Shown: positions 4,872 through 46,500, counted from the stretch's first letter. The stretch: DNA of 64,000 bases from Paragordius varius (GCA_964247055.1 OZ176051.1:7936001-8000000), one strand, 5' to 3'. The notes: generated by a model not told the origin, from the sequence alone. Translations and numbers: made by a program.

Positions 4872-7800
4872 ATGTATTTTAAAATTTTAAACTATATAGG
4901 TCTCACAATCTATATGTTAATTTATACTCTTTTCTCAAATACTCTTTACATTCCAAATAATATATCAGGACAGTTAGTACACTATATTATTCTCTCTATA
5001 TTAATCTCCTTTATAATATCTTGGTGGGGATATAAAAAGAAACATATATTATTTGATGCTGCGATTTTCGGTTGATTTTAAATGTTAATCTTTAGTTTTT
5101 TGGTTCGGATTTCTAATAAGTTTGTATTCGACATCAATCATGATGGCTTTAAGTACCTTTTTTATATGTGGTTCTATAGCTACTAAATTTAAATCAAGAT
5201 ACAAACTGCAATTTGATCCTGACTATCTAGGTAAAAACACTAAATAAAAATCTATTTGAAAAATATTAACTCAAATATACTATCAAACAAATACATAAGC
5301 ATTTTTTTATTTTTTTAAGAGATTATAATTTATCAAGAGTATCTAATTTTAACATTGAAAATATGAGACCAAATTTAGTATTATTTATTATCAAAGATAA
5401 TATATCCTTCCTTTCATTATGTGCTAGCGATCTATTTATGCTATAAGCTAATAGGTTACACCCTTAAATACCTAATTATTATAATGTATCGTGTTGGTAA
5501 TACATCAAATATTTAACTTCAATCCAACCATTCTACCGATATAAATCTGCCTGCGAAAATATAATATAATAAAAACTCTCAGTTGAAATAAAACTATGTT
5601 GGTTAAAAATACTAGCTCCCGAATTTTCTTAAATTTGTAACGATTTTTAATATCCGTTTTTAAACCAAATTTTAATCTTAATGTTAACACCTTAAAATTA
5701 AAAGTTTATAATATTAGGTGTAAAGGTAAAATTTAATTTTTTGCGGTCTTTTAGAAATAAAAATAACATAAGCAAACATATAAACTCTATTTTAAATATG
5801 CATTATGATAAATTATATGCAAAGATAAGGTTTGTAAAGCTAATGAACCGATTTATATTTTTTGAAACAAATCTATTTTCAGCCCTTTATAGGAAAATAA
5901 TCAATTGCTAGTGTTAAACTTAATAATTGAGGCGACAGATACATAAGCGTCCAATCAAAAATATTAATTAATAAGAAATAAGAAGGTAGACATGGCTAAA
6001 ATTAATAATTTTAACTCTTAATAATATCTTAATTTTTTAGCATATTCCATTAATATATCACAATTTCATAAATAAAATACATTGCTTGACCCATTGTTTG
6101 CTCTATTTTGCTTGAAAGTATTTGTTCATATATGACTTACTATCGTTCGGCAATCGAAACAATTTTATATAAGCATCAAAGGTAATTTCATCTTTATGCA
6201 AAAATTAAAGCGAATATAAGAGAGATAATAAGATTCGGATTTAAATTTTAAAAACCGGTTTCGGATGATCATTTCAATTTTTGACAAAACCGAAGACTGT
6301 TACATTTTTCTAAAAGCACCCTATCTATTTTCGAATTATAAGCTACAGTGTTACCTCTACTCTTTTTGGTTTAAAGCTCAAGTTGATACTTACGTGCATA
6401 TATTGTTTTGTTTTTAAAAAAATTGATAAGATATAATTGCCTTTTTTATAATTTTTACATTTATTTGGCAGATAAAAAACAACATAACGGACGCAATCTT
6501 GATCAAGTCTTATGTAATGGCGGTGTACCCGCTTTAATATCTCTCTATCAGCTCTTACGATACTTTTATTATCGTTCCAATTCATCTAGTGATCCTAATT
6601 ATGGCTACCAGTCAAGCGATAGTTTTTATGAATCAATCAAAAACCACAATAATAATAATAATGATAATATAAAAGCATTGATGATAAATGACTATCTATT
6701 TGCCATAATACCTATTGCATCTTACGTTGCTGCGTGTTGTGGTGATACATTGGCCTCCGAGTTGGCACCTATAACTTCCGTTTTTAACATTTTTTGCAAT
6801 GTTCAATTACGCAAAAATATCTTAAAAAATAAAGGGAATAATGACCTCCTTCTGTTAAATACTGAGAATAATGCAATCTATAATAAAGATGATGATAATA
6901 TTAGCAACAAAGTTTCCCTAGATACTCATAATTCTGTCGTTAATGGCCCCATTTTAATTACCACTGGTCAACCTGTACCATGCGGTATTTTAACTTTTTG
7001 GATAAATTTTGGATTATTTTGCAAAAAAAGGTAAAAGGCTATAAAAAAATTTCAAATTTTACAAAGACAGTAAGTAGTACGTTTAAACATTAATCAATGA
7101 TATTAAAGACGGACAGAAAATTAATCCTTAGCCTTATTTTTGTGTCCATTTTAAAATTTTAGCATTTGTTTAGTTGGATGGCGCTTAATTTTTGATAAAT
7201 AGTAGAGCAAGGATTAACAATAACGGGTGGGGTTGGTTTGATTATAAAATTTAGAAGTAAACGAGTCTGTTTTGTTCAATCAGCATAATTGAATCACAAA
7301 TTAAAATTTAAATATTTTGCGTTTATTTTAATTTTATGTCAATTGAGGTTCAGTACTAATTTGCGATTGTTAAATGATGTATAAATATGCAATATATATT
7401 TATGAGTATTGCATCATAAATCTCAAGAATTTTAACATTGGTAAATAAATTGTATCCTCATTAATAGGATTTTTTAATTAATTTATCTTAAAACAACTTT
7501 TTTTTCCAAAAGTTTCCCAATTAAATATAGGGTTCGGAAATTGTAACTCATTTTTGTAGGTCGAAATACATTGTCCGCTACATTTTGCGATCAATACAAT
7601 AAATCAAATATTAGATTTAGTTAGCAATTTTCTGATTGATTTTCTTTTTAATCGATAAGTGATAAATGATCAAAATACATAAAACGTATATTGGTCGATT
7701 TTTCTGGTTATATTTTGTTGCTTGTAAATGTAGTATAAAATTTTATTATATTGATTGCCGTATGAATATACTTTTTTTCCGGCAATTGTTTAGTAATTAT

Positions 7801-9699: not shown

Positions 9700-10014
9700 T
9701 TAATGCCATTTTGGGCAGACTGATTTACATATCGTACAGTTTTGTAATGAAAAAAAAAATTGATAGCCAAAATAAATTATTAACATTTAGTATCATTATG
9801 TTCAAAATAATTTATAATTTTTATGCATAAATCATTCTTAACTCATATATAATTTATGTTTAATTCGAAAGTTTTGATTTTTATAGGCCCAAATTTGCCT
9901 CTCTGTCAAACGAAAAGAAGTTAAAAGCACAAATGCATAAATGCCAAAATTAAATTTTGAGATGCCATAATTAAAATCTGTAAATGACATGTAAATATAA
10001 AATCATCCGCATAA

Positions 10015-10075
<61 letters not shown>

Positions 10076-10990
10076 TCGTAGCTAGAAAGAGGTCATTGTT
10101 TACAAATTGGAATTGCGGCCGATTGCTTGGGATTATATCCATTTCAAAATACGTTTGAAAAGCAAGTTCATATGAAATTTTTTTACAATATTCATATACA
10201 TCATTTTCATATACGGTATGATTAAGGCGATTGTTTTACAATTTGCATGCCTTTGCAAATCAAGAGACTATTTCGGTGTCCCTGACCTATGGAATTGCCT
10301 TTCTGGGCTTACGGAGTTCCATCCCCGCTTACATATATTACAAATTGGTTGTTTCTAGCAACTGGTTATAGCGCCAGATAAACCCGCTTTATCATCTGTG
10401 TGAATGCAGGTATTGTGGTATTTTATAGGAAAAAATTATGGTAATTATCTTTTTCCACCACACCCCACACAGATGATTTCTTTCCTTGCCGCTCCCGTTG
10501 GTATTAACCAGGGTGCACCACGCGGAGGTGGTCGGACTTTAATAAACACATATCAGCAAAAAACAAAGGTTTGATTTACAAAGCCGGCATACGTCCCATA
10601 CTCCTGTATGGTTGCGAAACGTGGCCGATGACAGATTCAATCGAGAAAAAACTAATGAACTTAGAAAAACGGATTCTAAATTTATTCCAACTCAATAAGT
10701 CAAATTCAAATTTACATCAACTCTACCAAATTGAACCTTTAAATGTCATGCTCAGAAAAAATAGGCTTAGATATTTCGGACACATCAAACGTGCTCCAGA
10801 ACAATGGACAAATAAAATTTTATCCCTACATCCCGAAGGTAACAATCGCAGGGGCAGACCAACATTCAACTGGGAAAAAACAATAAATAATGATTTAAGT
10901 GTTGCCAACATTGATGATGACGCCTGGCAGGATCGCAAATATTACAGACAGCTTCTATACGGATACAATGGCTAGCCATTGCACAAAGAC
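9700..10990. mobile_element. Degenerate RTE-like non-LTR retrotransposon with an inverted 5' part
   Basis: Plus-strand ORF 10571..10975 (RPILLYGCETW...RLRYFGHIKR...RRGRP..W) is the RTE C-terminal region. The minus strand at ~10250-9950 reads NCKTIALIIPYMK and DYADDFIF (RT motifs). Ends approximate. Confidence 0.75.
10017..10070. repeat. (TA)27 microsatellite
   Basis: Perfect TA run interrupting the RT remnant. Shorter TA runs lie near 12890, 21560, 23760, 36980 and 37640. Confidence 0.98.
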
Positions 10991-12088
10991 GATACGAATA
11001 TTCATATACATCAATACATTTTGCACATTTATCTGTAAAGAAATAAAACGGTATATTGTGGTGGTGAGGGAGGTGGAAACTGTTAATTAAACCAACAATT
11101 TTGAATTAGCTAAAATGGCTAATATTTAATCAAATCTTAGGTAATTCTTTTAAATAAAGGCCTAGAATAGAAACTACTTAATTATTCCTTCTTTAAGAAA
11201 AAATATCTTATCATAAGGCCAAACTGGCAAAGAAAATCCATAATAAAGCTTCAAACCAGCATTTAATCATAACTTCTACTCTGTTATAGCTATCATTATT
11301 ACATTAATACGCATATTAAATTAATTATGCAAATATGTATAATTTCAGCAATTGCAAAATTGTTAGATTTTGACACAAAAAAACAGTTATTGGTGAAGCA
11401 TTCACACAGAAATGATTATATGAAATGTGAGGGATTATTACATTTGTCAATTATATGAAGTAACTTTTCATTACTACTTATAGATATCTTATCATATTAT
11501 ATATGTTTTGCATAAGAAATCAATCAAACTTCTAAAAAAATAAATGGGGGGGGGGGGGATATTTAGTTTAATGCTTCCGGATTCTCAAATAGCTCACGAC
11601 TCTCTTTGCATTTACAATTTGCCTTAATCTAAAAAAAATTTTTTATAAATGCCTTAAAATGTTAAAAATAAAATTCTCTTTTGCAACGGAAATTGATAAG
11701 TAATGTACCAAATAGGTACTATTCCATTAAAATGTATCAAATATATATGTATGTTGTATGTAATTAGTATATATTAGTGTCTAAATAATTTCTAATAGAA
11801 GTAAATATATACAAATGCACCTTTCATCGATAAATATTTCGAAATAAAAAGGTCTATATTACATGACTACATTAAGCTCTGTAATCATATATAACTAGAT
11901 AATGTAAACCAGTTATGAGACAAAAAATTTTATGTTTTTTATGTTTTATAACATTTGAAAGACAAACTGTGCAGCCATATAAATATTTTCATTCTTTAAA
12001 ATTTTCATTCAAATATATAAAAAAATATAAATCAAACAATATTTATCACTAATTTATTTCTAAAATTTATATTTCATAATAATTGAAC

Positions 12089-22422: not shown

Positions 22423-22540
22423 CTAGGGCTTCGAACCGGTTCGAAAAAGTGTAACCGGAACCAGGCTGGTTCCTGGGCGGTTAGACCGTAACTGGGCTGG
22501 GTCCTGAAGTTCATGAACCGGAACCGAAATCGGACTTAAA
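22423..22540. mobile_element. Isolated GC-rich hAT-like terminus fragment
   Basis: Begins tagggcttcgaaccggttcg and carries several aaccgg/gaaccg motifs typical of hAT subterminal repeats; no matching other end found. Confidence 0.35.
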
Positions 22541-23753
22541 ATATTATGAAAAAAAATTATATAACTCGACGAACAACATTTCTATTCACTGGGGTTGTGA
22601 TTTAAAAATGAGTATGTAGATGATTTTTATATCATTTTTCGGTAAAAAGAACTTATATATGACTAACATTTTTTTAACAAATCTCTTAATTAATCTGAGA
22701 GGATAGAAATAGAATGATTAAATTAAATATAGAAGTATTTTATAATATCTTTAAGTGTTTTACCATACTATTTTGCGATTTACCTAAAATCTCGACCAAA
22801 ATTTGTTATAAATTAAATTAGAAAAAATATTTATAATTTGGTAAAAAACTTTTGATTCCAAAATTTAGCATATACTTTTATATTTGATTCACAATATCGG
22901 GATTTATGCCTTAATTCAATATAACCGGTTCATTTTAGATGCCAAAAGATTCAAACTTTAGGAGCCGACATCTAAGATAATAATATAGAAAATCATTTTT
23001 TCTTTTTATAAATACTCATAAATTTTAGTAATTCTTTTTGGAATCAACCCATAAGCTTTAACTAATAATATTTTATTCAACAAAATGTGCGCAAATTGCC
23101 ATTTTCTGTTATAGTTACCTCAAAAGTGTAAATAACTTTCTACTCTAAGGGCCAGAAGCATCATATAAAACATATTACAACTTTCTATCAGAATATTATT
23201 TTATCAGGTTATTTTTTGTGCAGTGTGTACATTATTTTTATCGCAAGTTTTGCGCAAAGTACAAATTTTCGTTCATTGAAGATAAGAACTTTTTTTATCA
23301 TTATATAACTGTTTTTTAGTGTTTTTAAAAAACTATAGTTATGTTTGGAACAATTTATCAAAGCCCACATTTTCTTTGTAGATCACATTTGATTATTATT
23401 AATTCTATTCTTTAAATGAAGATTTTTGATTCTACCAAAAAAATTATGGATAAGATCAAATCAAAAAATATGTAATTCACTGAATATTCCTTTGTATACA
23501 CTGAGCATATATTCAGAAAGTAATAAGATTTTAATGGTGTTGTTAATTTCGGGTTTAACGATTTATTTGGAGAAAAAAAAGCCAAATTTATGCTAAAATA
23601 AATGATGGTAATATGCACATACTGCAAAATTATTGTGAAAACACTGTTTACTATTTTATCATTTTGTTTAATCCGATCCATTATTGTGCCTTGTTAATAT
23701 AGGCTACCTCATAACAATGGCATGGTTGAAAAAAAATTTAAAAAATATCCTGA

Positions 23754-28717: not shown

Positions 28718-29427
28718 CATTCTTTCATCAGCTTTGTCCTTAATATTTTTCGCAAGTGTGTAAAAGGCTAACTCAACATTGATTCCGGATTTGGCACTGG
28801 TTTCCAGAAAAGCTACATTTTGTTCATCGGCTAACTTTAATATAAAATATAACATACCTTTTGTCCCCTTTCTTTTGATATTTTTCTGAGTTGGGGAGGG
28901 ATATCACATTTATTGCCACAAATTATTTTTTCAACACCCGTATTGGAACTTCCAACTTGTTGTTTGGTATGAGGAGAAATGGTGTTTGTATGTTCTTCTA
29001 TATTACGAATCCAATTGGAGATGTTTTCAAAAGATTTTTCATTTGTTATATCATACACTAATATAATTCCCTAAAACAAAGTAATTTGAAACAAATACCA
29101 TTGCTCCTCTATAATATGCTGTCGTTATAGTTCTAAATCTTTCGTGGCCTGCCGTATCCCTATAAAAAGTTTTTTTATTTAAATAAACCATATTTGCAAT
29201 TTGACACGTTTACCATCCACATCAATAGTTTTTATTTTGAAATCAATGCCTATAATGTTTATGATCACGAAAATACCTATTGTAGCAATAAACGTTGTGT
29301 TAAATGCATCATCTGAAAACCTAAAAAGTAGACAAGTTTTTCCAACACCAGAATCACCGATTAACAAAATTTTAAATAGGTAATCATAGGGGACTTTAAC
29401 AGCAGTAACAGATGCTGAAACCATCAT
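28718..29427 (-). CDS. RAB8: Rab8/Rab10-family small GTPase; last exon not resolved
   Basis: Exons 29427-29277, 29249-29189, 29159-29099, 29070-28858, 28834-28718. [41 protein letters not shown] and ETSAK motifs. Four introns of 27, 29, 28 and 23 nt. A phase-0 donor follows ...KADERM. Confidence 0.88.
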
Positions 29428-29553
29428 ACATAATAAATAACACACATTGCCGAACGCAATGTACCGAATCAAAGCTGATTAAATAAGTATAAATATCGTG
29501 TTGGTGTGACGGTAATTTTAAATATATATATTTTCAGACTTTGTGATAACATA
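29428..29553. promoter_or_regulatory. Very short head-to-head interval between Rab8 and the claudin-like gene
   Basis: Only 126 nt separate the two divergent ATGs (29427 minus, 29554 plus). A probable 26-nt 5' UTR intron lies at 29512-29537. Confidence 0.5.
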
Positions 29554-32500
29554 ATGCTCCCTACTTCTGCCAAAGTTTCTGTGCTAAGTCTTTTTTTAAC
29601 TACAATACTCAGTGGTGTTGGGATTTTTTCCAATTTTTGGGCCCTTTGCTATTTTGGAACTTTTGGTCTTTGGCAATTTTGCTCAGTCAATCAGTGTTAT
29701 TATACATGGGATCGATTCGAGATGTTCACGAAAAGTGCGGACCAATTTCCTGGTATGAAAATATTCAAATATTTATTTAACCCATATCCATTAAAAATTT
29801 AATATTTTTAATTAACATTACACCTGCATGTCGTTATGCGCGTACAAAAGGGAGGAATAAAATATATTTTAATGGATGTAATTTGTATTATAACTGTCAA
29901 TCCATAAAAGTATTAGAAATTAATTATCATTATTATACTACCGTTGTTTATTATGTGAATGAAAAGGGTAAGTGTTTAACCTTAACCCCAATTTAATCAA
30001 TACGCGGTGTATAAATAATTTATAACTTTCGCTTTAGATAATGGTAATATGAATGTTAATAGGAATGCAAGCTATTCTTACCTGATATAATTAAACAAAT
30101 TTTATATAAACATATGTGTTATAAGTATTGATTTCAACACCTTCCATCTTGGATTTAAAAGCTATTATATTTGTTCTCAATAATTTTTTACTTCAGTTCA
30201 ATGGATCAATAAACTTTATTTAACCTGCCATCATGCGTGAAATAGCATTCCTGTGCCAATAAATAGGTTTTTCCCTTTTGAGCAGTGTTAATTCTCTCTA
30301 TACCTGAGAGCCATATGTGAGCTTATTTTTTTCCACTCTAAAAACCTATAAACGGCTTGCTTGGTTTAATTTAGCGTTAGCATTGCTTTCACGAAATGCA
30401 TGGTGAGAAAAAATTTTATATATGTTATTAAAATTACCAGGCCATAATTTTTTTGTAGCCGCATATTAAAGATATATCCCAGCTTGCCTAAATACATCAA
30501 AATTAGCTAAAATTGATATAATTTATTTCAAATCTCCTAATCATATCTATAGAGAGAAGCAGGAAGTGGATAAGTTTTTTTTGGTTGAGCGAAATATAAA
30601 TAAATTTACACACTTTCATATATGTTTATGAGAATTTATTTTATATATATCATATATACAAAATGTATAATTAACGGTTAAAATAACATTGAGTGGCCTA
30701 TATATCACAGGTATGTGAAAAATAACTCCATTATACGTAATTTGCACACAGAAAATTATATACATGTACACATATATTTGCAATGAAAAAAAAAAGTTTA
30801 AAAAAAGCATTTTCTCTACACCTTAAAATGACCTAAACCATTCTTTCAAAAACGAGGTTCGAACGAAATTCAAGCAATTTTTAATTACAATGCACATTGG
30901 CTTTATGGCCTAGCTTGCATTCCGTGATTCTTTTTTCACGCTCGTGGAAATTTAATTTAAATAAATTTATGTTTAAATTATAAAAATGTATATAATAAAC
31001 ACGTTATAACTTATTGATTTTAAATTATACTACATTAAATTATTTGCTGTAAAAATACCTGGTTATTGTTTTATTATACAGTATTATTTGATGTAATAAA
31101 AATTAAATAAATATATATTGTGTGTTTCTTCTTTCATTCCATTTTTTCGCATACAGTTATAACTATCACTCGTTATTTATGGCTCTGTTTTTATTTCATA
31201 TATTTATAATCGCGTAAATAATACTTAATATTATTATTTGAATACCTGTGCTCTTTTACCTCAAAAATATTTTAAACCATCCCTATCATTATCACAATAT
31301 ATATACACTTTGCAAAAACTTCTATAAAACATATCAATTTATTTCTTTTTTTGTATTCAAAGATTGGTATTTTTGGTAATAATTTTATATAAATATATTT
31401 TTGTCATCAATTAAATATTTATTTTGTTAATATTTCTTAATTTTTTTATGCATCAATTACGTACTCCACATATATGTGATTTTTGATTAAACACTAAAAA
31501 CAAAAGTTAAAATAGGGCGTGTGGCGTACCTGATTTATTGATAATTTATTTATTATTAATTGTAAATTATAAAATTTAACCTTTCCAATACAAACATTTT
31601 TGAAGCATAAAAAATTGTTTATTTTACGCAATTTTACTTTATTCCATATTAAATGAGTTTATTGCCGATCACTTAAAACACTAATAATTTATTTTTAATA
31701 TCTCTTTTTAGCTTCCGGTGTCATTTATATCGATTACTACGATCTATTCTTTAAATGACATAATCTGTTTAAGGAGGATATCCTGAAATTTACACCTCTA
31801 AGTGTTTTCAATCCTTTATCAGTATTATAAGTAGTATTTCGCGGTTTTAGTCATCAGTTTATAGAATCCCAACTTTTTCCTTTTTCCCCCCCTCTAAAAA
31901 ATGTTTCGGTCCGGTGAAAAGGTGTTGGAAAGGGAACGTGACATTGAACGCGTATATTATCCGAATGAACCAATGACCTATCCTGTTGTGGGAACGACTA
32001 TGCAAGGTGGCGGAGCTGCTGGTAACACTATACGTTATTCTGGTTATCCTAATGTTATTACAAACACCACCCTAAACACTGCTGCTGGACCAAATCAACA
32101 ACAGCAACAGCAGCAGCAAACTCAACAAATGCCTGCCCAATTTTTCGCTACAACACAAATGCAACCGGGCCAAGCTCCCATGCAATTGCCCCAAACCACG
32201 GTTAACACATATGTGGGGGGTGGAGGAGGAAACACACTCCCACGAGGCGAAACTAATGTTATTGGTCGACAATCTATGCGAAGAAATGGAGGTGGTGGGA
32301 CACTTCAAAGAGGAGATATTGCCGCCGCTAATAACAATGGGGACAATGTTAGTGAATGTCGATCCTGTTCCATATGTTCATCAGAACGCTCAGTAGCTGA
32401 AGATGCTTATAGGCAAAAAAAGAAACGACGCATGTTGGGTAAATCATTTCCCCTTGCAGCTTTGTTAATTGGTTTACTCATCTGCGTGAGTTTTATCAAT

Positions 32501-35500
32501 TGGATTGGTATATGGAGTCCTTTTTGGGCACTGGCAAGGAATCCGTTCCTTATATATCCCGTTACATCGACCACCACTGTGAACACAGGGGTCCGGGGTG
32601 TCGGTGGCTCCGGCGTTGGAGGAGCCGGTGATATTCCTGTACTTTTGAATCCACAAACAGTTCAACCGCCAGGCGGCCGCATTGGTATCGGGAATCCCAT
32701 TTTTGGACACTTGGGTATATGGGCCTATTGTGCACCAAGAAGTTTTTGTGTGACATACCCGTATGGCAGGGCCAGACCTTATGGATTTTTTTCAGCTGCA
32801 GCCTTTTCCCTGTCATTAGCCGGGCTTGGAGGCTTTTTTACCCAACTTTTTGGTGGTCCCTTGTTGGGTAACTTGGTGGGTGGGCTAGGGTTCGGCGGTG
32901 GTTTACCAGGTGCCCTGGGTCCCGGATTCGCTGGTTTAGGTGGTTTTGGGGGAACGGGTGTCCTAGTCAAAAAGCGAAGTTTACGCGACGACACCATGGA
33001 TGATAGCAACAATGCAATTTTTAATAGTCAAAACAATTTTTATTCCTATAAATTGCCAATTCACTCACAACATAAACGTGATATATCTCCTTCATCATCT
33101 GATCCCTTTTTACGTCGCTCTGGACGCCGACAAATACAGCCTCAATCTCACATTTCAGCATACGGTATAAATCCACAAGCCTACCACCAGCCTGCGTTTG
33201 GCATGAATACGGGTGTACCCCGTTCACTCGCATCAGTATTACCCAGTAATATAACGCACCCATTCTTTTTTTATGATGTGAAAAGCCCGGATGGAATAAA
33301 TCCCAAATTGAAAGACATTGTCAGTTTCGTTAAACACTACAAGGAAAAATTGGAGAACCCCAAGAACAGGGGAGGAACTGCTACCGGTAATGCAAATTCA
33401 TCCCCTACCTTCCAACGAGCTGGTAATGTGAATGATCTTGATGGTAATCGATCCATTCGTCGTCAAATGGACTCCTCCCCATACAACGCCGGTAAGGATG
33501 GTTCGGTCAAAGAAACCGATCCTGATTCTTCCCTATCCCGTAACAATCGACAGCTCATAAATCAACCTTTGATGGATATGGGTGCAGGTATAGGGGGCGG
33601 TTCACTCATGAACAGTGGCTGGGGTCTTGGCAATTTGGGGTTAGGTGGATTGGGTGCCTTAGGCTTGGGCGCTTTCGGAAATCGATTTGGGGGTCTTAAC
33701 GGTCTCCTTGGGTCTCAACAAGCCCTAGTGGCGTTTGCTTTGTTACAACCCGGCCCCGAGGGTATACCTTTGCCTGAAAATTTTTTGTTCTCCCTTCCGG
33801 GTAGCATAAGTCCTTTCGCTTACTTCCGGAATCGTGTGCGGGAAAATGTTGGTACGCTATTAATATAACTATTTACATTTAGTTTTGGGATTAATATGTT
33901 TCTAAATTATTAGATCTTAATAATTTTTAGTATCTATGGATTATTTATAAAATTATATTCCATACTAATTGAATCCTACCTAATACACTGCATTAAATGT
34001 TTTAAAGTTAATATTTATTGCTGTTATTGTTTACACGAAAAAAGATTAATTAAAAATATTTAATTTACATTTTTTCCTTAAGGCTAACTAAACATCAAAC
34101 TACTATGATAACAAACATATAAGGTCATTTATGACTCATTGTAAAAGAGAGCTAAAAACTTTACATAAAATTTTTGAAAAAAATTTACAATCTAAATTTT
34201 AGCCATAACATTGATTGAAATTGATACATGTAATAATATACTTACAACATTGTAAAATTTTATTTTTACTCTAATCTAATGGTTAGAACAAGCTTGTTCA
34301 CATCTTTTTTACCTTAAAACATACATACGCGCATGTTATAATTTAGCTGAAAAATTAAACATAAAACCTTATACACAAAATATTTTATCGATCTAAAATT
34401 CGAAGGACATTTTTGTTTTTTAATATGTTTTATATATATATTAATATGTTGTAAAATTTACCTGTTTAAATGCTAAAAAAATTATATTAACTTAAAGCTA
34501 TAGGAAATCATCCATAGTTAATAAAAACAATAATTGGGGTATTTTCCAATACTTTGTTCTCTATTGGTAATGACACACATGTGACAAAACTAATCAATAC
34601 CTATATCATAATTGTGTTAATGTTCTCAAGGACAATTTTTTTAAATAAAATTTTTTAATATAACTCTTGCCTTAATAATAATGAACTCTGTAGCATGAAT
34701 GTCTTTTGTATTCATGACATAGTTTGTTTTACAAATATTGATTTTGGTTCATAGAATATATTATTTGATATCCGACCTTATTAATTATTTAATTGAGTCT
34801 GTATTTCGATTTTTCGCAATAATTTTTCGGCTATTTCTGTCTTTTATAATTTAAAAGTTTTGTCGAAAATTTAACGAATTAATTAGGGTTTTTAATTGTT
34901 TCTTATATGTTATATTTATATAATTTAAAAATTTTAAGCCTTTTTAGATATACACAAATTTTTCGCATGTTTAATCCTTCAATACTGTTAAGCTAATATA
35001 CGAAAGCCGCCACCCCTTAAAGTGATTCCATCATTGTTTAGCGCCTATTTCCGATTTTTAAATACAGATATAGTGCTTAAAAATACTACGGTTCGAAAAT
35101 GTGGTTTATTTGAAGGATTATTTTGACATATCACGGTGATGATGGATATCTCTTAGTTTGAATACAAACTTTGGGGCATTTGAGGCAGCTTGGACTATAA
35201 CGTTCTGTTGCTACGTATCTGTGCGAGGAATCGATTCTGCTGTAATTTTTTTGATCCTAGGGCAGTTTAGGTGCATTCCATGTTTTCCAGATCCTTCTAC
35301 TGAGTCCAACATAAAAAGCCTTTTCTATTATCAGCTCTCCACACATAATTGAAGAATTTTAGTTGAAGTTATTAAGGTAGGATTTGTTTGTTTCATCATT
35401 TTGCTTAGTTCTCATTATGTATATAAAACATTACCTATAGGACCAAAATTTAAATGCGTTAAATTTATTGCAATCGGTAATGAGGGTCCACCTGGAAAAC

Positions 35501-38052
35501 CATTGTTTCTGTTTCTCGCTTGTTGATGGAGGTCGGAAATTTTTTTGTAGAATCGATTTAAGTTTAATTGATTGACATTGCTATTTTTCTGTTAATGTCT
35601 ACCATAGAGGTACCATTTATTCATATAGGTAATTATGAATTTGTGACAGTATTTCTGTTTACCTCAGTTGAATTGATAAGCCGTTTGTATTTGTCATGTA
35701 TTGAATTTTCTTGGGTGTAGTTTTCAGACCCCATTCGATGCTTTATTTTTTATTATATTTAAAAGTCATAATAGGTCTTCTTTTGTTTCGCTGATTCTAA
35801 TTTCGTCGGCCAAGTGTAAATCGATGATCTTGCCTCCTATTCTGATACTAAGTGAGTCTTCTACTATCATTTTTATTATATTTTTAGAATATAAATTGAA
35901 CAATGATAGGGAGATAGGATCCAGTGTCTAACCTTTCTATATTTATCTTATTGCTGCTTTTTGATTTGTTTAAAGATTGTTGAAATTTATATTTAGTGGA
36001 ATGCCTACCTTTGTTATATTGTTTCCCATAGTTTTGTAGGATCCACTCTACATAGGCCTGTGAAAAATCCAGGCATATATTATTCTTGATGTAGTCGTTG
36101 GATTGTTTATTAGGTTTAATATGGAGTCTCTATAACTATATAACGCTGAAATCAGCCTGTTTATTATATATGAAGTTATTGTACCAATCTATACCCACTT
36201 ATATTACTTTGAATAATATTTTGATAATATGGGGTATGAACGCTATTATTCTGTAATTCTCTAATTTTTTCCTGATTCTTTATTATTATGGTATAAAGAT
36301 TTCAATCTTTTGCGCACTGGCTTTTTAACAGAATCGTTTGGCAAAAATTTATTTTGATTTTATTGGTACTAGCACCTCTCCCGGGATTCGGCTATCTCGG
36401 GGGTTTGTTGGAAGTTCTACAAGCGCGTTTTCAATTTCTGCTTGTGTCTAGGATCTGTTTTATAAATATTTTTTATTGTATTTGTTATATTTGTAAATTT
36501 TACCGATACCTATTTTTCCCATTTGGTTGAAATTTGTTGGTTAGCAGGTTTCCTTCATTGTTGTTTATTGCTATGTTTTGGATTTTTTCAGGGGAGGAGA
36601 GTTTCGGATACTTCCCGCAGTTTTTGGTGACATTGCTTACGCAAAGCTGATATTTAAGCTAAAATGTATGAGTGGTTTTAATATATTTCCCATCCTGTTA
36701 GTGTTTTGGCTATAGTAAATGATGATAGGTAGTGGTTTTATATTGATAACAAGTTGTGTATAGTGAATTCTGGTTTAATTAAACTAAAATCGAAGACTTA
36801 CTTAATAAAACCTAAGAATGTTGCGAGAAATTAAATCATTAGTAACTATGGCCAAAAGAATTCCAAGATCGACATATCAAACCATAACCTACTCACAACT
36901 TTTTTTACAGATCAAAACAAAAGAATATTGTATGTATTGATCATTACTTCTTAAAAAGCACTAGAATAATATCGGAAATTATATATATATATATATAATT
37001 TAAATTTAAAAGAAAAATTAATGGGATCTTGGGGTTACCCTGATAGAATATATATTTGAAAATTACGCAACAATTAGTATTTATATTTTATTTGGCGACT
37101 AATTTATGTATAACTAGTTAAACTTTACTAATAATGACTTTATTTTTCTATAAAAAAATGGAGTATTTGAATTTTTTATTTATTTTAATAAGACATCCGT
37201 TCAAAAATTCCAAACATACCTATCTTGTTTACTAGTTATTTTATATAAATTTTCACATTTTAATTGTCGACCATAATATAGCCTGGTTCATTAGTGTTCA
37301 AACATTGGTTGGTGTGGGTTTCGCCCTTAATCTGTTGGGCTTCATCCTGGGTATCCTTTATCTATGCACATACTATTCCAAAGCTGGTCGGATTTTGGGA
37401 CGTCTCGCTGGCATACTTATATTTTTAGCAGGTTAATTTGTATATCTGTTATTTTGTATCATCGAATATAACTTTACATCTTTTATGTTTTTTTACAATA
37501 TTATACCTTATCACCAAAATAAAAAAGTATTTATATTAAATAAAATCGTGCCATTGAAATTATTAACAAAAATTATTAGGTAAATGTGATTTTGAAATTG
37601 ACCACCAAAATTTATAGTTATTAATTTATTTTTGATATATATATATATATATATACAGTATGAATAAGTATACATTACTAGTTTTTCATATTGCCAAATA
37701 GCATATGCGGAAAAGAGAAATTATTGGCTTATAATAGTAAAAAGTGAAAAAATACTATATGCCAATAATATATATTAATTTGTAATAATTTATGAAAAAA
37801 GTAGCAATGTATACTTACTTATACTGTATATCAATTATTTGTGTATGCGTAGCCATTTTGGAATTGATTGGGATTTGTGTGTTCATTGCCAAAGTTCGCT
37901 TAGACCGTAATGCATTTTTCCATATTGATCCGGCATTTACCATACATTCAGGCGTGGGTTGGGCCTATTACGTTTCATTGTCTGGAGCCTTGTTGCTTCT
38001 AATATTGGGTCTGTTTATGATGTGGGAATCGAGTTTTGAAAATCGAGCATAA
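29554..38052 (+). CDS. Claudin/PMP22/EMP-like tetraspan protein, short isoform (182 aa)
   Basis: Exons 29554-29752, 37282-37431, 37853-38052 (549 nt). TM1, then FW..GLWQFC....C; PAWFISVQ-TM2; TM3; GWAYY-TM4. All phases are compatible. Confidence 0.75.
31901..38052 (+). CDS. Claudin-like tetraspan protein, long isoform (766 aa) with giant first exon
   Basis: Exon 31901-33851 ends in phase 1 (GTT G|gtacgc) and joins the same exons 37282-37431 and 37853-38052 (2301 nt). It contains TM1 and the IGIWSPFWAL and HLGIWAYC...C motifs. Confidence 0.75.
35150..36500 (-). mobile_element. Degenerate RTE-like LINE reverse transcriptase remnant in the claudin-like intron
   Basis: Minus strand reads ENYRIIAFIPHIIKILFKVII (~36270), QADF and ICLDFSQAY (~36150-36060), LHLADEI (decayed YADD, ~35810) and EWGLKTTPKKIQYMT (~35730), with stops and frameshifts. 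Confidence 0.75.
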
Positions 38053-40293: not shown

Positions 40294-42043
40294 TAATGAA
40301 CACAGGATACACGGTCAGTTGGAAGTTTTTATATATACTGAGTATTTAAGTTTTTAAGACTAAATGTAGTTGATTAAGTGAAACAGGAGAACTTAAAGCC
40401 CAGAAGGGGTACCGATTGTACTAATATCAAACCAAGATAATTTGAAACATGAAAGAACATTGTGGTGTGATATTAACAAAACACTAAAAAATTGGTTAAA
40501 GATTTATATCTTAGAATTTTGATTAAATTATTTAGTCTTTGAATTAAAATAAATAATTTTTAAATCCTCTTAAATTTGAATGTTAATGAATATAATTTGA
40601 AAAATGCCATGAATATCTTCAAGGGCATCAAAATTAGGAAAAATAATGTTTACTAATAATATAAAGTGTTTTATACCGTTTCATCATGCTAAAATACCAC
40701 ACTTCAGCAAAATTTTGGGTAATCGTATTTTCTATTAAATATCCAAATGTCATTTAGCAATTTTTTTAACGTGGGATCTAGACCTTGCATCGATTTAAAA
40801 ACTAGCCTATTTTAAAATCATAATAAAATTTCGGATACATCTGAGATAATATGAACAATGTTTGTTTGGTTAAATATATTTTAATTAAAATAAGAGTTTA
40901 TAGAAAAACATAAGTCAAAACACTAATTTTTGATTGTCAGCTTTTTAATAGTTTTTTTTATAAAAAATGAATCGAAAACTAATTTTGAAACGATAGATAA
41001 TAGTATATTCATTAAAACATAAGTAATCCCGTTTTGGTACCTGAGATGAAGAAATAAAATATATTTTTAACTAAATTTTATATTTACCAAATCTATATAT
41101 AAAATAATCTTTATAACTAAGTTTTAAAATTTGATTTAGTGTTAGAACATGTATTATCTCGTCTCAGATACCGAGCAGGCAATCACATGTTTTCAAAATT
41201 TAAGGAGCCAATGTCTTAACAATAAGTTTTTTTGGTGGTTTGGTTTATTTTTTACATTTCACCCATACAATAACCTGATTTTGCATTTTAGACGGATATT
41301 GACGCTTAGATACTTATAAAATTACGGATAGATTAATTTGAACGAAATCACTTTTGAACAATTCAAATTCACCCTAAAAATAATTTGTGTTTTCAGGCTT
41401 ATATCATCATTATAATATGAAATATATCTTTATATAGTTTATTATTTTTTTAGTATTATTTTGATTTAAATCAAAATTTTATTTTTAAAAATATATAGGT
41501 CATTTTTTATCTTAAAAACAAACACAATTTATTTTAAGGTGAATTCGAATTTAAGGGTAAATTTGAACTATAAATGGTATATCATGAATATTCTTAAACA
41601 GCATCTGTTTTTCTATATTCTTTCCATGTCAATTTTTCTGGATTATAAAGATGCTGTTTCCTATCCAGAAAAAAGAATTTTATATTTGCTATCTTATGAT
41701 AATATCTATTTTAATATTTTTTTAGAAAAATTGGCCAATTGCTTATTTTTAATGTAATTTTATGAATAGTACTTCTAAAAATAAAGCTTTTTGTATTGTG
41801 AATCAAAAAGGTGCCTAAAATTTTATGTCATTACATATACCCAAATTATAAGGGTCTTAAATTAATAATCTTCTGTAAAAACTAAGGCATTTTAAAGAAA
41901 TTTTATTTAAATTTACAGCTTTGAAAACTTTATTTTTCCAATAATTTATATTTTAGTTATTATAATAAATAAATAATGATTTCCCGAAATTTAAAAACAG
42001 CTGAATAATCAGTTTTTGGGTTATTTTTCTTATAGTTCAGAAT

Positions 42044-42531
42044 TTAACATCAGGATACAACCATTTATTTCAATTCACCGATTAAAATAGGGGTGTTTGG
42101 GGACCCAGGCCTGTTTATATCAAATATTTTTAAAAATATGGAACAAATTGAAACCATTGCAATTTGCAATTATATAACGTTGATGCACCGAAATTGATAT
42201 TACTCATTTTATGGATAAACTTGAAGATTAAAATTTATCCAACATGTGTGAATCAGCTATATATAAAAATAATGCAAAATTAACCACTTTTTCTGTTTAT
42301 ATCAATGTTGTGAATTAAAGCGTTAAAATAAAATAAACACGATATTCTGCAAAAATGTGTAAAATAAAAATGGCGTCGAAGTAGTTTGATATGGAACTTT
42401 TTATTTCAAAACTAATTTTTATTCTTATTATAATAGAGGCATCGCTAAATGAAACCCTTTCTAAGTAGTTTTTAAAATTATCAAATATAGTCTGGGGTCA
42501 CTAGATACCCCAATTCGAATTGAAGTGTTAA
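42044..42531. mobile_element. piggyBac-like MITE, copy 3 (more diverged)
   Basis: TTAA-CATCAGGATAC... to ...GAAGTG-TTAA; core aaaaatggcgtcgaagtagtttg at ~42368. Confidence 0.75.
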
Positions 42532-43548
42532 AAGTTAAGTATCTCTATCCAAAAATACCAATATTCAAAAAACATTTTTAAAGCTAAATTTACACAGTAT
42601 GACTAACATTTGTGCATTTTAAAATGATTCTATCATTATTTGGAACGTGCGCATATAAACAATGAAAACGATGCTTCGTTGGACACTACACTATTAGATT
42701 TACTTTAATGGAGCCGATAATTAATTTATTAATTTTTGAATGCCAATATGTCTGAACAAAGTATTAAGTTGGCTCAAAACACAAACATAATAAAAATGAC
42801 ATTAAAAATTATATTTTAACCATTTTTTGTATAAAATCTAAATTTTTTACATAATATAAAATTGACTCTGGCCTGTTTGTTGTTTTAGGGAAAATAATGA
42901 GTCATTATCATTCAATTAAAAAAATGAACAATACGGGGGTTTTTGTTTCACAAAATATTTAATGATTATTATATATAATAAAATATTAATTATAAGCTCT
43001 ATCACGTATTGATTTGCTTAATATAAAAAATATTGATGAGATTCCCTTCCATATGTCATCTCATTATTATCATCGAAAGAAACATGGGAAATATAAACCA
43101 ATATTTTTAGCTTGCGAAAATTGCGTAAGCGTGTAAAAAAACAGAATCTCAAAAATGTTTTTATGATTTTATTTACATATATATATTTTTTTATTTGTTT
43201 TGGTTCCAACAATTAGGGAATATAATATCATATATAATACTGATAATAAATCACATTACATAACAACAAAGATTAAAGGGGAATTCGGAATTCGATATTT
43301 ACATATTTAAATTGTAACATATATAATAATACACTAATTTCTTTATATTGAAAAATTGCATAAATTACTTTAATGACTTAATTATATTTTAAACGGTTTA
43401 ACTTACTACTTATGATTTTTGTGATAACAAAAAAAAACATTTCACAATATCCTATATGATTATTTTATATTCCACATTCTTACATTTAACAGGAAACCCA
43501 ATAATTATTCTACATTGTGATTAAAAAGTTAGCATATACTGTTTTGTT

Positions 43549-46500
43549 ATGGCCAATATATCACCGTTCCTTAAAGATATCGAAAATTTTTCCAAAAACC
43601 GTTTGCGAAAAGTCCAAACCAAAGTCATTACGGCTAATGGACAACGATTGGTTGAAACGAAAGATGCACAGTATGTTTCCTAATTACCTTAATTTTATTG
43701 GATTTATAAACATGTCTGAATATGAATATTTACAAAGCATAATATTTGTTTTTATATTTATTTTTCCATTGTTACATGAGTGGGAAAACTTGGTTAAACT
43801 ACACCACCCATTATTGAGAAGAGCTTATATGTCATTGCTTTAAAAAATTTTTATCCCAGTAATAGCTTGAATTTATCAGTGGGCAAAGCGCTAAACCAGG
43901 GGTGTTCAACAACCTGCGAGAAATTTTGCAAAATTTTACAAAAACTTGGAAAAAATTAACAAATTTTTTGAATGTCCTTATTTGGCAATGAACTAGCAAA
44001 AATTGTAAAATAAATTGTAATTTTTACAATTGATAAAATCTAATTAAATATTTGTTAATTCCCATATATTTTTTAAATGGAGCCCGCAAAGCCATTTGTG
44101 TTGACCCCTGCTCTAAACATATATGAGAGCAATACAAAAGGTGTGTTTATATAAGAAATATTTAATGTTAAATCCATATTTACAGTATACGTAATTGATT
44201 TAGATGACCATTTAACAAGACTAATCATCTTATAAAAACATATATATATTTTACTCTAATTCAGGATGTTTAACACAGATTTCGCATGCTGCTTATAATT
44301 TTTGTTTATTAATTTTAAGCTCAACTTCGGATGATATATTTAATATATAGTAAACTTTTGATTGAAATTCAATTTTTTTTTAACATTTTTTATAGCACTT
44401 CGGTCTCGTTTTCTTTCCTCTTTTGCGTTTGACATTATTGTGTTTCTCTAAGGAATCGGACCGATTATGCTAAAATATGTAAACACCTCTAAGATATATT
44501 GGGAGTTATTTGTATTAATTATAAGATACTACGAAAATCAGTTTTAAATTTACCAATATATGTTGTAATAAGAAGCTACCACAAATGCTATGAAAAGAAA
44601 AGCATAATGCTAAATATCGAGCCCATGATATATAATTCTGTGAGATATTTTTAAATCGATAATTATATCGTAAACATAATTTTCGCAATTATAAATATAT
44701 ATTTTTGGCGTTATAGGTAAATGCATAATTCCGGGAGTGCACCGTTATTTACTAGTCTTATAGCGCGAAGGCTTTAGGTGTTTGCTTATATTTTGGATTT
44801 GTATTTTTAACAGTTAAAAATTTAGTGATTTAAGAATTTACATAGAAAAATACCAATTAAGGTTTATTATTTTAATATTTTCACTTAATTATTGCGTTCG
44901 AGATAAAACCGGCAACTCATGGACTTGAAATTGGAGATAATGTTTTAGCATCAGCATAAGTATTTATCACTTTCTAAAAGATAATTGTATACTCGTATAA
45001 ACTTGCACAGTTGTAGTAAATCAATATTAAATATTTTTTTTCTATTTTAATATAGAGGCAATATCATTGTGAAAACAGAGGATGGAAAAATCGTACCGAG
45101 TCAAGAATCTCCGCCAGATAAAGTGTCGGCCCCTAAACCCAAACAGTCGACCATAAATGGGACACAACCTGTTAACACGAATGAAACGGTCGGCGAAGAT
45201 AATGAAGAATTAAATACTATTAAATCTGGCCTTGCGCGTAGTCGATTAGATCGTCAGGCCAGCATTGATGCAATAAAATCTAGCACAAGTATAAAAAATA
45301 AATTGGGCGCTTTTGCAGGAGGTGGAACCCCAACACCTGAAAAATCGGCTTCTGCGACATTTCGCAAATCTCCGGGTGAGCGGACCAAATAACATATAAA
45401 TTTGGTTTTCTTAAAACTAGATATTAGGTTTGATTAAACTCAAGTATTTTATAACTTAAAAAATAATCTATATATCCATATCTAAATTTACGTATTATCC
45501 AAGCACTAATTTAATATTTGATTTTGATTACAGGAAATTTGCCTAAACCTGATCAATCTTCAGGTTCACAAAATTCTGATAAAGCACCCCCACCTCCTCC
45601 AATAATAAAAGCTCCAATTAAATCGAACATTCAAACTACCATTGCAAGTTCCTCTAAACCCACTCAGGAATCAGATCAAAGTTCGACAGATATCATAACT
45701 CAACGTTTACAAAGTGGAAAACAAATTGTTGAAATACTTCCTGGCATCGTTATGGGTAATTCTTCCTAAACTTACTCTAATTGGGAAAAAAATATTGAAT
45801 TTATTAATTTTTGCTAATAATTTTTATTATTTAGGATTCAAAGATTTGAAAGAACGGTTGCCAGATCTGTCTGGGATCGGAGTTACGCATGTTCTAAATT
45901 TCCTTCCCAGATTAACGTTAGATAATAGCAGTCAAAAGAGTTTTTTTTATAAAAAGGTTGGATTAGTTAATATATTTTTTACGATGATTAATCATTTATG
46001 ATTTATGCATTTAATTTTTCCCATGTTAATACATACCAATTAATCATTCGGTTTTATTAAGGTTGATATCGCTGATACACCTCTCACTGATATTCGGCAA
46101 TATTTTCAAGAATGTTTTGATTTTATTGATGAAGCAAAGAAATATAAAGGAGCCGACGGAGCGAACGGGAAAGTGCTGTTATTTTGTAACGAAAACGAAT
46201 CCATATCATCTTGTATTCTGCTAGGTTAATATAATATATTTATTGTTTTCGAAGAATAATTATATCAATTTATTATATAAAATGGTGCGTAATTAATAAT
46301 ATATATATTATTATTTGAAATCGTGTTAAAAGAAAGATTTCGAATATTTTTATATGGATTGTATGTTTACATTTTAACAAAATTTTAATTCAAAGCCTTA
46401 TTTTTCAAAGCCTAATTAATTATTCTGTCATACTTTCGATGATATTTCGAAATATTAGAATTACAGCTTAAATATTACTTGATTTATGCTAAACAATGGC

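Follow-up and report, generated by a model that had tools for sequence, protein, structure and literature searches.

Candidate alternative first exons upstream of one claudin-type membrane body in the horsehair worm Paragordius varius

Can one claudin-like gene of a horsehair worm present two different outer faces by starting from either of two first coding exons? The question is raised by a locus of Paragordius varius at positions 29554-38052 of a stretch of 64,000 nucleotides (nt) that was analysed as a whole (G000:C2:7936001-8000000, hereafter the window; the assembly comprises 110.6 Mb in 44 contigs). Two exons that each begin with an ATG, here called 1a and 1b, lie upstream of a single pair of exons, 2 and 3, that encode transmembrane helices (TM) 2 to 4. 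We consider it likely that two isoforms are produced from this one locus, with 1a and 1b serving as mutually exclusive 5' coding exons before the common two-exon body. The proposed gene would be a lineage-restricted member of the Claudin_2 type in which either first exon is spliced to the TM2-TM4 body. Use of exon 1a would yield a compact four-pass protein of 182 amino acids (aa) whose first outer loop has about 40 residues, and use of exon 1b would yield a 766-aa protein in which the identical membrane core is combined with a first loop of about 445 residues and, on the cytoplasmic side, a head of about 185. The choice of first exon would thus swap TM1 and the first loop, plus the head in the long form, and leave the remainder constant.

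Exon anatomy and the long isoform

All four exons are on the plus strand. Exon 1a (29554-29752) spans 199 nt from its ATG to the donor CCTG/GTATGA, where the slash marks the splice junction, and exon 1b (31901-33851) spans 1951 nt, or 650 codons and one base, and ends at GTTG/GTACGC; both end in phase 1. Exon 2 (37282-37431; ATATAG/CC at its start, 150 nt, GCAG/GTTAAT at its end) is in phase 1 at both ends, and exon 3 (37853-38052; GCGTAG/CC, 200 nt) closes with a TAA stop at 38050-38052. The introns measure 7529, 3430 and 421 nt. When either first exon is joined to exon 2, G and CC form an Ala codon that is followed in frame by WFISVQ, and the predicted products contain 66+1+49+1+65 = 182 residues (1a-2-3) and 650+1+49+1+65 = 766 residues (1b-2-3). 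Without splicing, the 1b frame continues to a stop at 33868 and encodes 655 aa. This exon model had been put forward in a first-pass annotation made from the window alone, and direct reading of the sequence confirmed the two ATGs, the phase-1 ends and the open frame into position 37282, as well as the motif pairs quoted there (VGIFSNFWAL in 1a and IGIWSPFWAL in 1b; FGLWQFC-x4-C and LGIWAYC-x5-C).

The window is AT-rich animal DNA with a G+C content of about 27% that climbs to 45% across 32-34 kb, and an Rfam search of its whole length returned no match. Neither exon 2 nor exon 3 recurs in the window or elsewhere in the 110.6-Mb genome, where exon 1a and the core of 1b are likewise each single-copy, and inspection of the introns for plausible open frames or hidden TM2-4 exons gave none. 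Splicing of 1a into 1b was considered as a further arrangement and rejected: the sole in-frame acceptor upstream of the 1b ATG, which would start an exon at 31851, meets a TAG after four codons. The earlier claim of one locus with one TM2-TM4 body, and no separate TM2-4 exons for 1a or 1b, therefore agrees with the searches of window and genome and with the comparison to a second species described below.

The long isoform almost certainly exists. In a collection of 5.8 billion proteins the 650-aa translation of exon 1b matched a single cluster, from the horsehair worm Gordionus sp. m RMFG-2023, which has two members, P0001 (637 aa) and P0003 (742 aa). P0003 (CAK9293394.1 and the three RefSeq entries XP_065324724-26; LOC135931496) figures in the submitters' protein set as well as in RefSeq, and the Gordionus annotation was guided by stranded RNA sequencing. 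It joins a 1b-type exon to the body at the predicted junction (...FAYFRNRVRENI-A-WFISVQ..., RENI-A-WFISVQ), the same connection that had been proposed between 33851 and 37282. Residues 629-677 of P0003 are 73% identical to exon 2 of the window, and residues 679-738 are 75% identical to exon 3. Exon 1b is colinear with both Gordionus proteins over its full length and conservation stops exactly at the donor, of which the GT and the phase are retained. P0001 stays colinear to the end of 1b and continues past the donor; similarity ends at ...RVRENV-G in the window and ...RVRENI-G in Gordionus, and the tails that follow are not conserved (TLLI at window positions 33852-33868, KLFSPFEFN at 11882-11915 of the Gordionus locus L003, each before a stop). 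A read-through of the P0001 type may reflect intron retention or a prediction artefact. Given the junction in P0003 and its Pfam Claudin_2 score (see below), we take 1b-2-3 to be a real claudin-superfamily protein and 33851 to be a conserved donor.

Exon 1a and its probable partner

The locus has the same exon order in Gordionus, where on L003 the 1a counterpart occupies 5042-5239, 1b 10001-11881, exon 2 22527-22673 and exon 3 22782-22973. When 20 kb of the window were compared with 33 kb of L003 by tblastx, only 1a, 1b, exon 2 and exon 3 gave matches above 40 bits, and blastn aligned coding blocks only. The Gordionus gene models start at 1b, and 1a is absent from the annotation there. Its ortholog of exon 1a nevertheless aligns from ATG to donor, with all 66 codons free of gaps and 56% identity. 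The 3' end (...CCA A/GTAATT) keeps phase 1, and joining it to Gordionus exon 2 (AAAG/CT) makes a Thr codon from A and CT, again followed by WFISVQ. Beyond the donor the frames of the two species are unrelated and meet stops after 8 and 16 codons.

The pattern of substitution in exon 1a resembles that of coding sequence. Identity to Gordionus at codon positions 1, 2 and 3 is 0.70, 0.74 and 0.42 for 1a and 0.67-0.78, 0.88-0.95 and 0.28-0.33 for the body, synonymous sites being saturated between the two genomes. Flanking 1a, the 60 nt to each side cannot be aligned and show background identity only. Because of this codon-position pattern, the gap-free frame and the background-level flanks, exon 1a is judged to be a coding exon that purifying selection maintains and whose phase-1 donor is conserved, and it is very probably a functional coding sequence. 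Comparison with a related genome, as the first-pass annotation had recommended, thus identifies 1a as a coding exon that is conserved in Gordionus down to its start, donor and phase. In its product, 7 N-terminal residues lead into TM1, and the compact first loop that follows has the signature W29, G38-L39-W40, C43, C48 and F55-x-x-F58; the Trp, the GLW triplet and both Cys are all invariant in Gordionus. Searched alone against Pfam, exon 1a gave a weak match to TMEM37 (E=0.004), and its nearest atlas clusters by features were claudin-type N-terminal fragments.

The next question is where exon 1a is spliced. Exon 2 provides the only conserved downstream phase-1 acceptor, and from the conserved phase and the lack of any other partner exon there is a good likelihood that 1a joins exon 2. 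The best-surviving alternative is that 1a is conserved and coding but lies outside this gene, as a separate small membrane-protein gene or as part of a transcript that ends or splices elsewhere, in which case the claudin-like gene would make the long form only. Such an arrangement would fit with the lack of a 1a-type isoform among database proteins, with Gordionus gene models that begin at 1b and with an acceptor-like site directly before the 1a ATG. Against it, the phase-1 GT donor is precisely where conservation stops, and the tails read through beyond it are unlike in both length and sequence. Exon 1a encodes TM1 and a claudin-type loop (W, GLW, C, C) with features like those of claudin N-termini, that is, half of a fold that needs TM2-4. 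Moreover, downstream conservation is otherwise limited to exons 1b, 2 and 3, and the one in-frame acceptor before the 1b ATG leads straight into a stop. We regard placement of 1a outside the gene as unlikely.

A second alternative, that 1a is an abandoned ancestral first exon now decaying after 1b took over, is quite improbable. Its identity of 56% is indeed lower than that of the body (73-75%) or of the 1b core (83-100%), and it is missing from annotations, but it keeps its ATG, 66 codons free of stops and indels, its donor and its phase despite randomised third positions and introns. Positions 1 and 2 are far better conserved (0.70 and 0.74) than position 3 (0.42), and the chance of an open stretch of 66 codons in this AT-rich DNA is about 0.007. 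Least probable of all is that the 655-aa frame at 31901-33868 stands alone as a single-exon gene within the first intron of a 182-aa claudin-like gene, with 33851 unused: although P0001 is annotated as just such a read-through, P0003 links the 1b-type exon to the body in both protein lists, the donor keeps its GT and its phase and marks the end of similarity, and 1b carries a claudin-type TM1 and loop motifs without TM2-4 of its own.

Under the preferred model of one gene with two first exons, separate promoters would serve 1a and 1b. The region upstream of the 1a ATG contains a pyrimidine-rich acceptor-like site 16 nt away in the window (TTTTCAG/, 29531-29538) and 4 nt away in Gordionus (TTTTTTAG/, L003 5031-5038). 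Given its presence in both species, 1a may follow a non-coding exon rather than open the transcript, and the site hints at either an upstream non-coding exon or a trans-splice acceptor. A literature search found no mention of spliced leaders in Nematomorpha.

Several observations weigh against the two-isoform model and its family assignment. With the Gordionus body as query, no protein of 63-201 aa carrying this body was found in the 5.8-billion-protein collection, and the 1a isoform seems to be absent from both the submitters' and the RefSeq annotations of Gordionus; low or stage-restricted expression could explain the missing short form. The homology of 1a and 1b rests on short motifs, with an hhalign probability of 28%. 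Exons of the window searched singly stay below the Pfam cut-offs. A fully conserved, moderately hydrophobic Gly-rich stretch of 1b (residues 295-317) has a hydropathy of 1.5 and, if it crosses the membrane once, could disturb the assumed topology. Finally, the submitters' list for Gordionus includes P0001, in which the 1b donor is read through, and 1b may also give an unspliced product.

Immediately upstream of the claudin-like gene, a Rab8/10-like GTPase gene is found on the minus strand (28780-29427), in divergent orientation to exon 1a, its ATG lying 126 nt from that of 1a. Four ultra-short GT..AG introns restore its frame, at 29276-29250 (27 nt), 29188-29160 (29 nt), 29098-29071 (28 nt) and 28857-28835 (23 nt). 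In Gordionus a PA28 proteasome-activator gene (L003 29245-32973) follows downstream of the claudin-like gene; weak tblastx matches suggest a PA28 neighbour at about 41000-43900 of the window as well, and the local gene order may be kept.

Origin of the first exons, membrane layout and family

Are 1a and 1b versions of the same exon? They have three colinear motifs in common, each invariant between the two species. The first lies at the exit of TM1 (GIFSNFWAL in 1a, GIWSPFWAL in 1b), the second is GLWQFC-x4-C in 1a and GIWAYC-x5-C in 1b, and the third is F-x-x-F at positions -13/-10 from the splice junction in all four sequences. BLASTP of 1a against 1b returned two colinear matches, each with E=0.004, and hhalign gave E=6e-4. 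The local alignment scored 46 compared with 28.3 +/- 4.3 for shuffled sequences (reached by 2 of 500), and a chained alignment scored 87 compared with 60 +/- 7.4 (reached by none of 300); the z-scores of both are about 4. By these measures the similarity is modest and above chance. Among the claudin-type first exons found in the genome, 1a and the 1b core each pick out the other as best match (z of 5.0 and 4.3; others at most 3.5), which fits the exon duplication that had been proposed for this locus. Most likely, judging from sequence comparison, 1a and 1b arose by tandem duplication of a first coding exon before the two genera split. Further claudin-type exons of the genome were located at C5:8106005 and at C5:2718583 and 2724310.

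After such a duplication the 1b copy would have expanded, gaining the head and two large insertions. Its long loop can be described as a 1a-type loop with insertions of about 55 and about 350 residues, in the larger of which well-conserved, Gly-rich ends flank a weakly conserved middle (26% identity). Along exon 1b, whose product (31901-33851) comprises a cytoplasmic N-terminus of about 185 residues, TM1 and a first loop of about 445, the degree of conservation varies by region. The N-terminal motif M-x-R-...-KVLERERDIERVYYPNE (31901-31969) is 83% identical to Gordionus, and a cytoplasmic Cys cluster, SECRSCSxCSS (32345-32398), which precedes KKKRR and TM1, is 78% identical. TM1 and the exit motif GIWSPFWAL, the region that matched 1a in BLASTP and hhalign, occupy 32432-32536. 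The first insertion (32537-32701), about 55 residues between the FWAL and GIW motifs, is rich in Gly, Pro, Val and Thr and 89% identical, and FGHLGIWAYC-x5-C (32702-32749), the counterpart of the claudin GLW-C...C motif, is 100% identical. It is followed by a Gly/Leu/Phe-rich block with 30% Gly that includes the moderately hydrophobic residues 295-317 and ends in a conserved K-R-S site (32750-32980; 87% identity), by the hydrophilic middle of the loop, 200 residues rich in Ser, Asn, Asp and Pro (32981-33580; 26%), and by the Gly/Leu-rich end of the loop (33581-33851; 81%), which has F-x-x-F at -13/-10 from the junction as in 1a. The two conserved loop blocks (32750-32980 and 33581-33851) contain 24-30% Gly, and no family match was found for them.

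The remainder of the protein is encoded by exons 2 and 3. Exon 2 (37282-37431) specifies TM2 and, after a short basic loop in the cytoplasm, the first half of TM3; exon 3 (37853-38052) completes TM3 and adds the second loop, TM4 and an 8-residue tail. Kyte-Doolittle hydropathy peaks at 1.95 for TM1 in 1a, 2.36 for TM1 in 1b (residues 186-204), 2.2 for TM2 in exon 2 and 2.06 for TM4 in exon 3. TM3 (LAGILIFLA-A-ILELIGICVFIA) is divided by the junction of exons 2 and 3 and was identified by eye. Basic residues precede TM1 (KKKRR) and occupy the TM2-TM3 loop (K, R, R). This arrangement points to four TM helices with the termini and the short middle loop in the cytoplasm.

Family membership was judged on the natural ortholog P0003, the window exons being searched individually. 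Against Pfam Claudin_2 (PF13903), P0003 scored 45.6 bits where the cut-off is 29.1 (E=9e-12), and its residues 625-734 aligned to positions 83-191 of the 192 in the profile; the rest of the profile does not align because the first loop is too expanded. The claudin-family body claimed for this locus is thereby upheld through its Gordionus ortholog, in part only with respect to the two profiles that had been named: Claudin_2 was matched above its cut-off and PMP22_Claudin (PF00822) was not (21.0 bits, cut-off 26.7). Exon 3 alone gave a weak Claudin_2 match (E=0.028, 14.7 bits). The first-loop signature W...G-L-W...C...C is present in 1a, and 1b has the GIW form (W209, G-I-W at 272-274, C277 and C283, 100% conserved in Gordionus), in which GIW replaces GLW. 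Classical tight-junction claudins end in a PDZ-binding tail (-YV); no PDZ-type C-terminal tail is present in the window protein (...ESSFENRA) or in that of Gordionus (...EASTGYR). Taken together, by profile and motif the protein is a very divergent Claudin_2-type tetraspan of the claudin superfamily, and it may have a role at the surface or at junctions.

Other searches returned little. NCBIfam gave no match, and a sequence search of the PDB gave no significant match, the best noted being TARP gamma-8 (7lep, E=0.65). With exon 3 as query, phmmer against 1.84 billion representatives found only a 90-aa ENA fragment (P0002, E=3.8e-4). Word-index searches with the whole of 1b, the 1b core and the Gordionus body returned the Gordionus cluster only, or nothing; an atlas search with the 1b core found no match, and no contigs encoding P0001 or the 655-aa frame of the window are on record. 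In these protein searches no relatives outside horsehair worms were detectable. AlphaFold2 modelled P0003 from a 4-row alignment with a mean predicted local distance difference test (pLDDT) value of 38.5, only TM2-4 reaching 70-80, and a complex prediction that combined the Gordionus 1a peptide with the Gordionus TM2-4 body scored 0.23 where the mark is 0.34, a value that is neutral as to the pairing of 1a with the body.

Comparison with known systems

The closest relative is Gordionus LOC135931496, the ortholog of the long isoform, which is 46-89% identical depending on the region and has the splice junctions and locus layout in common with the window, including the unannotated 1a. Its introns are longer (10.6 kb between 1b and exon 2, compared with 3.4 kb), and it is annotated merely as an 'uncharacterized protein', without a short isoform. 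In a phylum where hardly any molecular cell biology exists, the locus brings to light a conserved coding exon that the gene models of the only annotated relative omit, along with a claudin-type protein whose first loop is exceptionally long. Its practical value is modest: improved nematomorph gene models and a defined isoform pair for the larval, parasitic and free-living stages.

The members of Pfam Claudin_2, which include the TARP/calcium-channel gamma subunits, TMEM37 and TMEM114, resemble the window protein in the four-pass layout and the GLW-C...C-type first loop, but the window protein has no significant similarity to any single named member. Elsewhere in the P. varius genome a second Claudin_2-type gene (G000:C1:14221331-14225570) has one 5'-profile match and two neighbouring 3'-profile matches (14224633-14224800 and 14225424-14225570), which look like a duplicated last exon. 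Both genes vary one end of a tetraspan by exon duplication, but the gene on C1 varies loop 2, TM4 and the tail, not TM1 and loop 1.

The nearest parallel in design is found in the vertebrate claudins CLDN10a/b and CLDN18.1/18.2, in which alternative first exons 1a and 1b are each joined to a common exon 2; these first exons supply the N-terminus together with TM1 and the first extracellular loop, and their exchange alters loop-dependent properties (PMC7642450; PMC12317400). The variable region of CLDN18 has 69 residues (PMC7642450; PMC12317400), compared with 66 in exon 1a of the window. The same layout, two first coding exons for the N-terminus, TM1 and loop 1 upstream of one exon 2, is found in the window and in Gordionus. 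The likeness is one of design, with no detectable orthology to CLDN10 or CLDN18. Unlike theirs, the window cassettes differ tenfold in size, the long one being extended by its head (about 185 residues) and its loop (about 445), and use of the short cassette is predicted. A more speculative and rather doubtful extension is that horsehair worms evolved a swappable TM1/first-loop cassette independently of vertebrates, and that one version of it grew into a Gly-rich ectodomain of about 445 residues with the conserved K-R-S site and gained the cytoplasmic head. One core would then either form a minimal tetraspan or hold in the membrane a large, possibly processed, surface- or matrix-facing domain, perhaps according to the life stage of the parasite. 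If both isoforms are made, the gene would be an invertebrate parallel to the CLDN10/CLDN18 design, independently reached, and would suggest that first-exon swapping is a recurrent way of re-tuning the outer face of claudin-type proteins.

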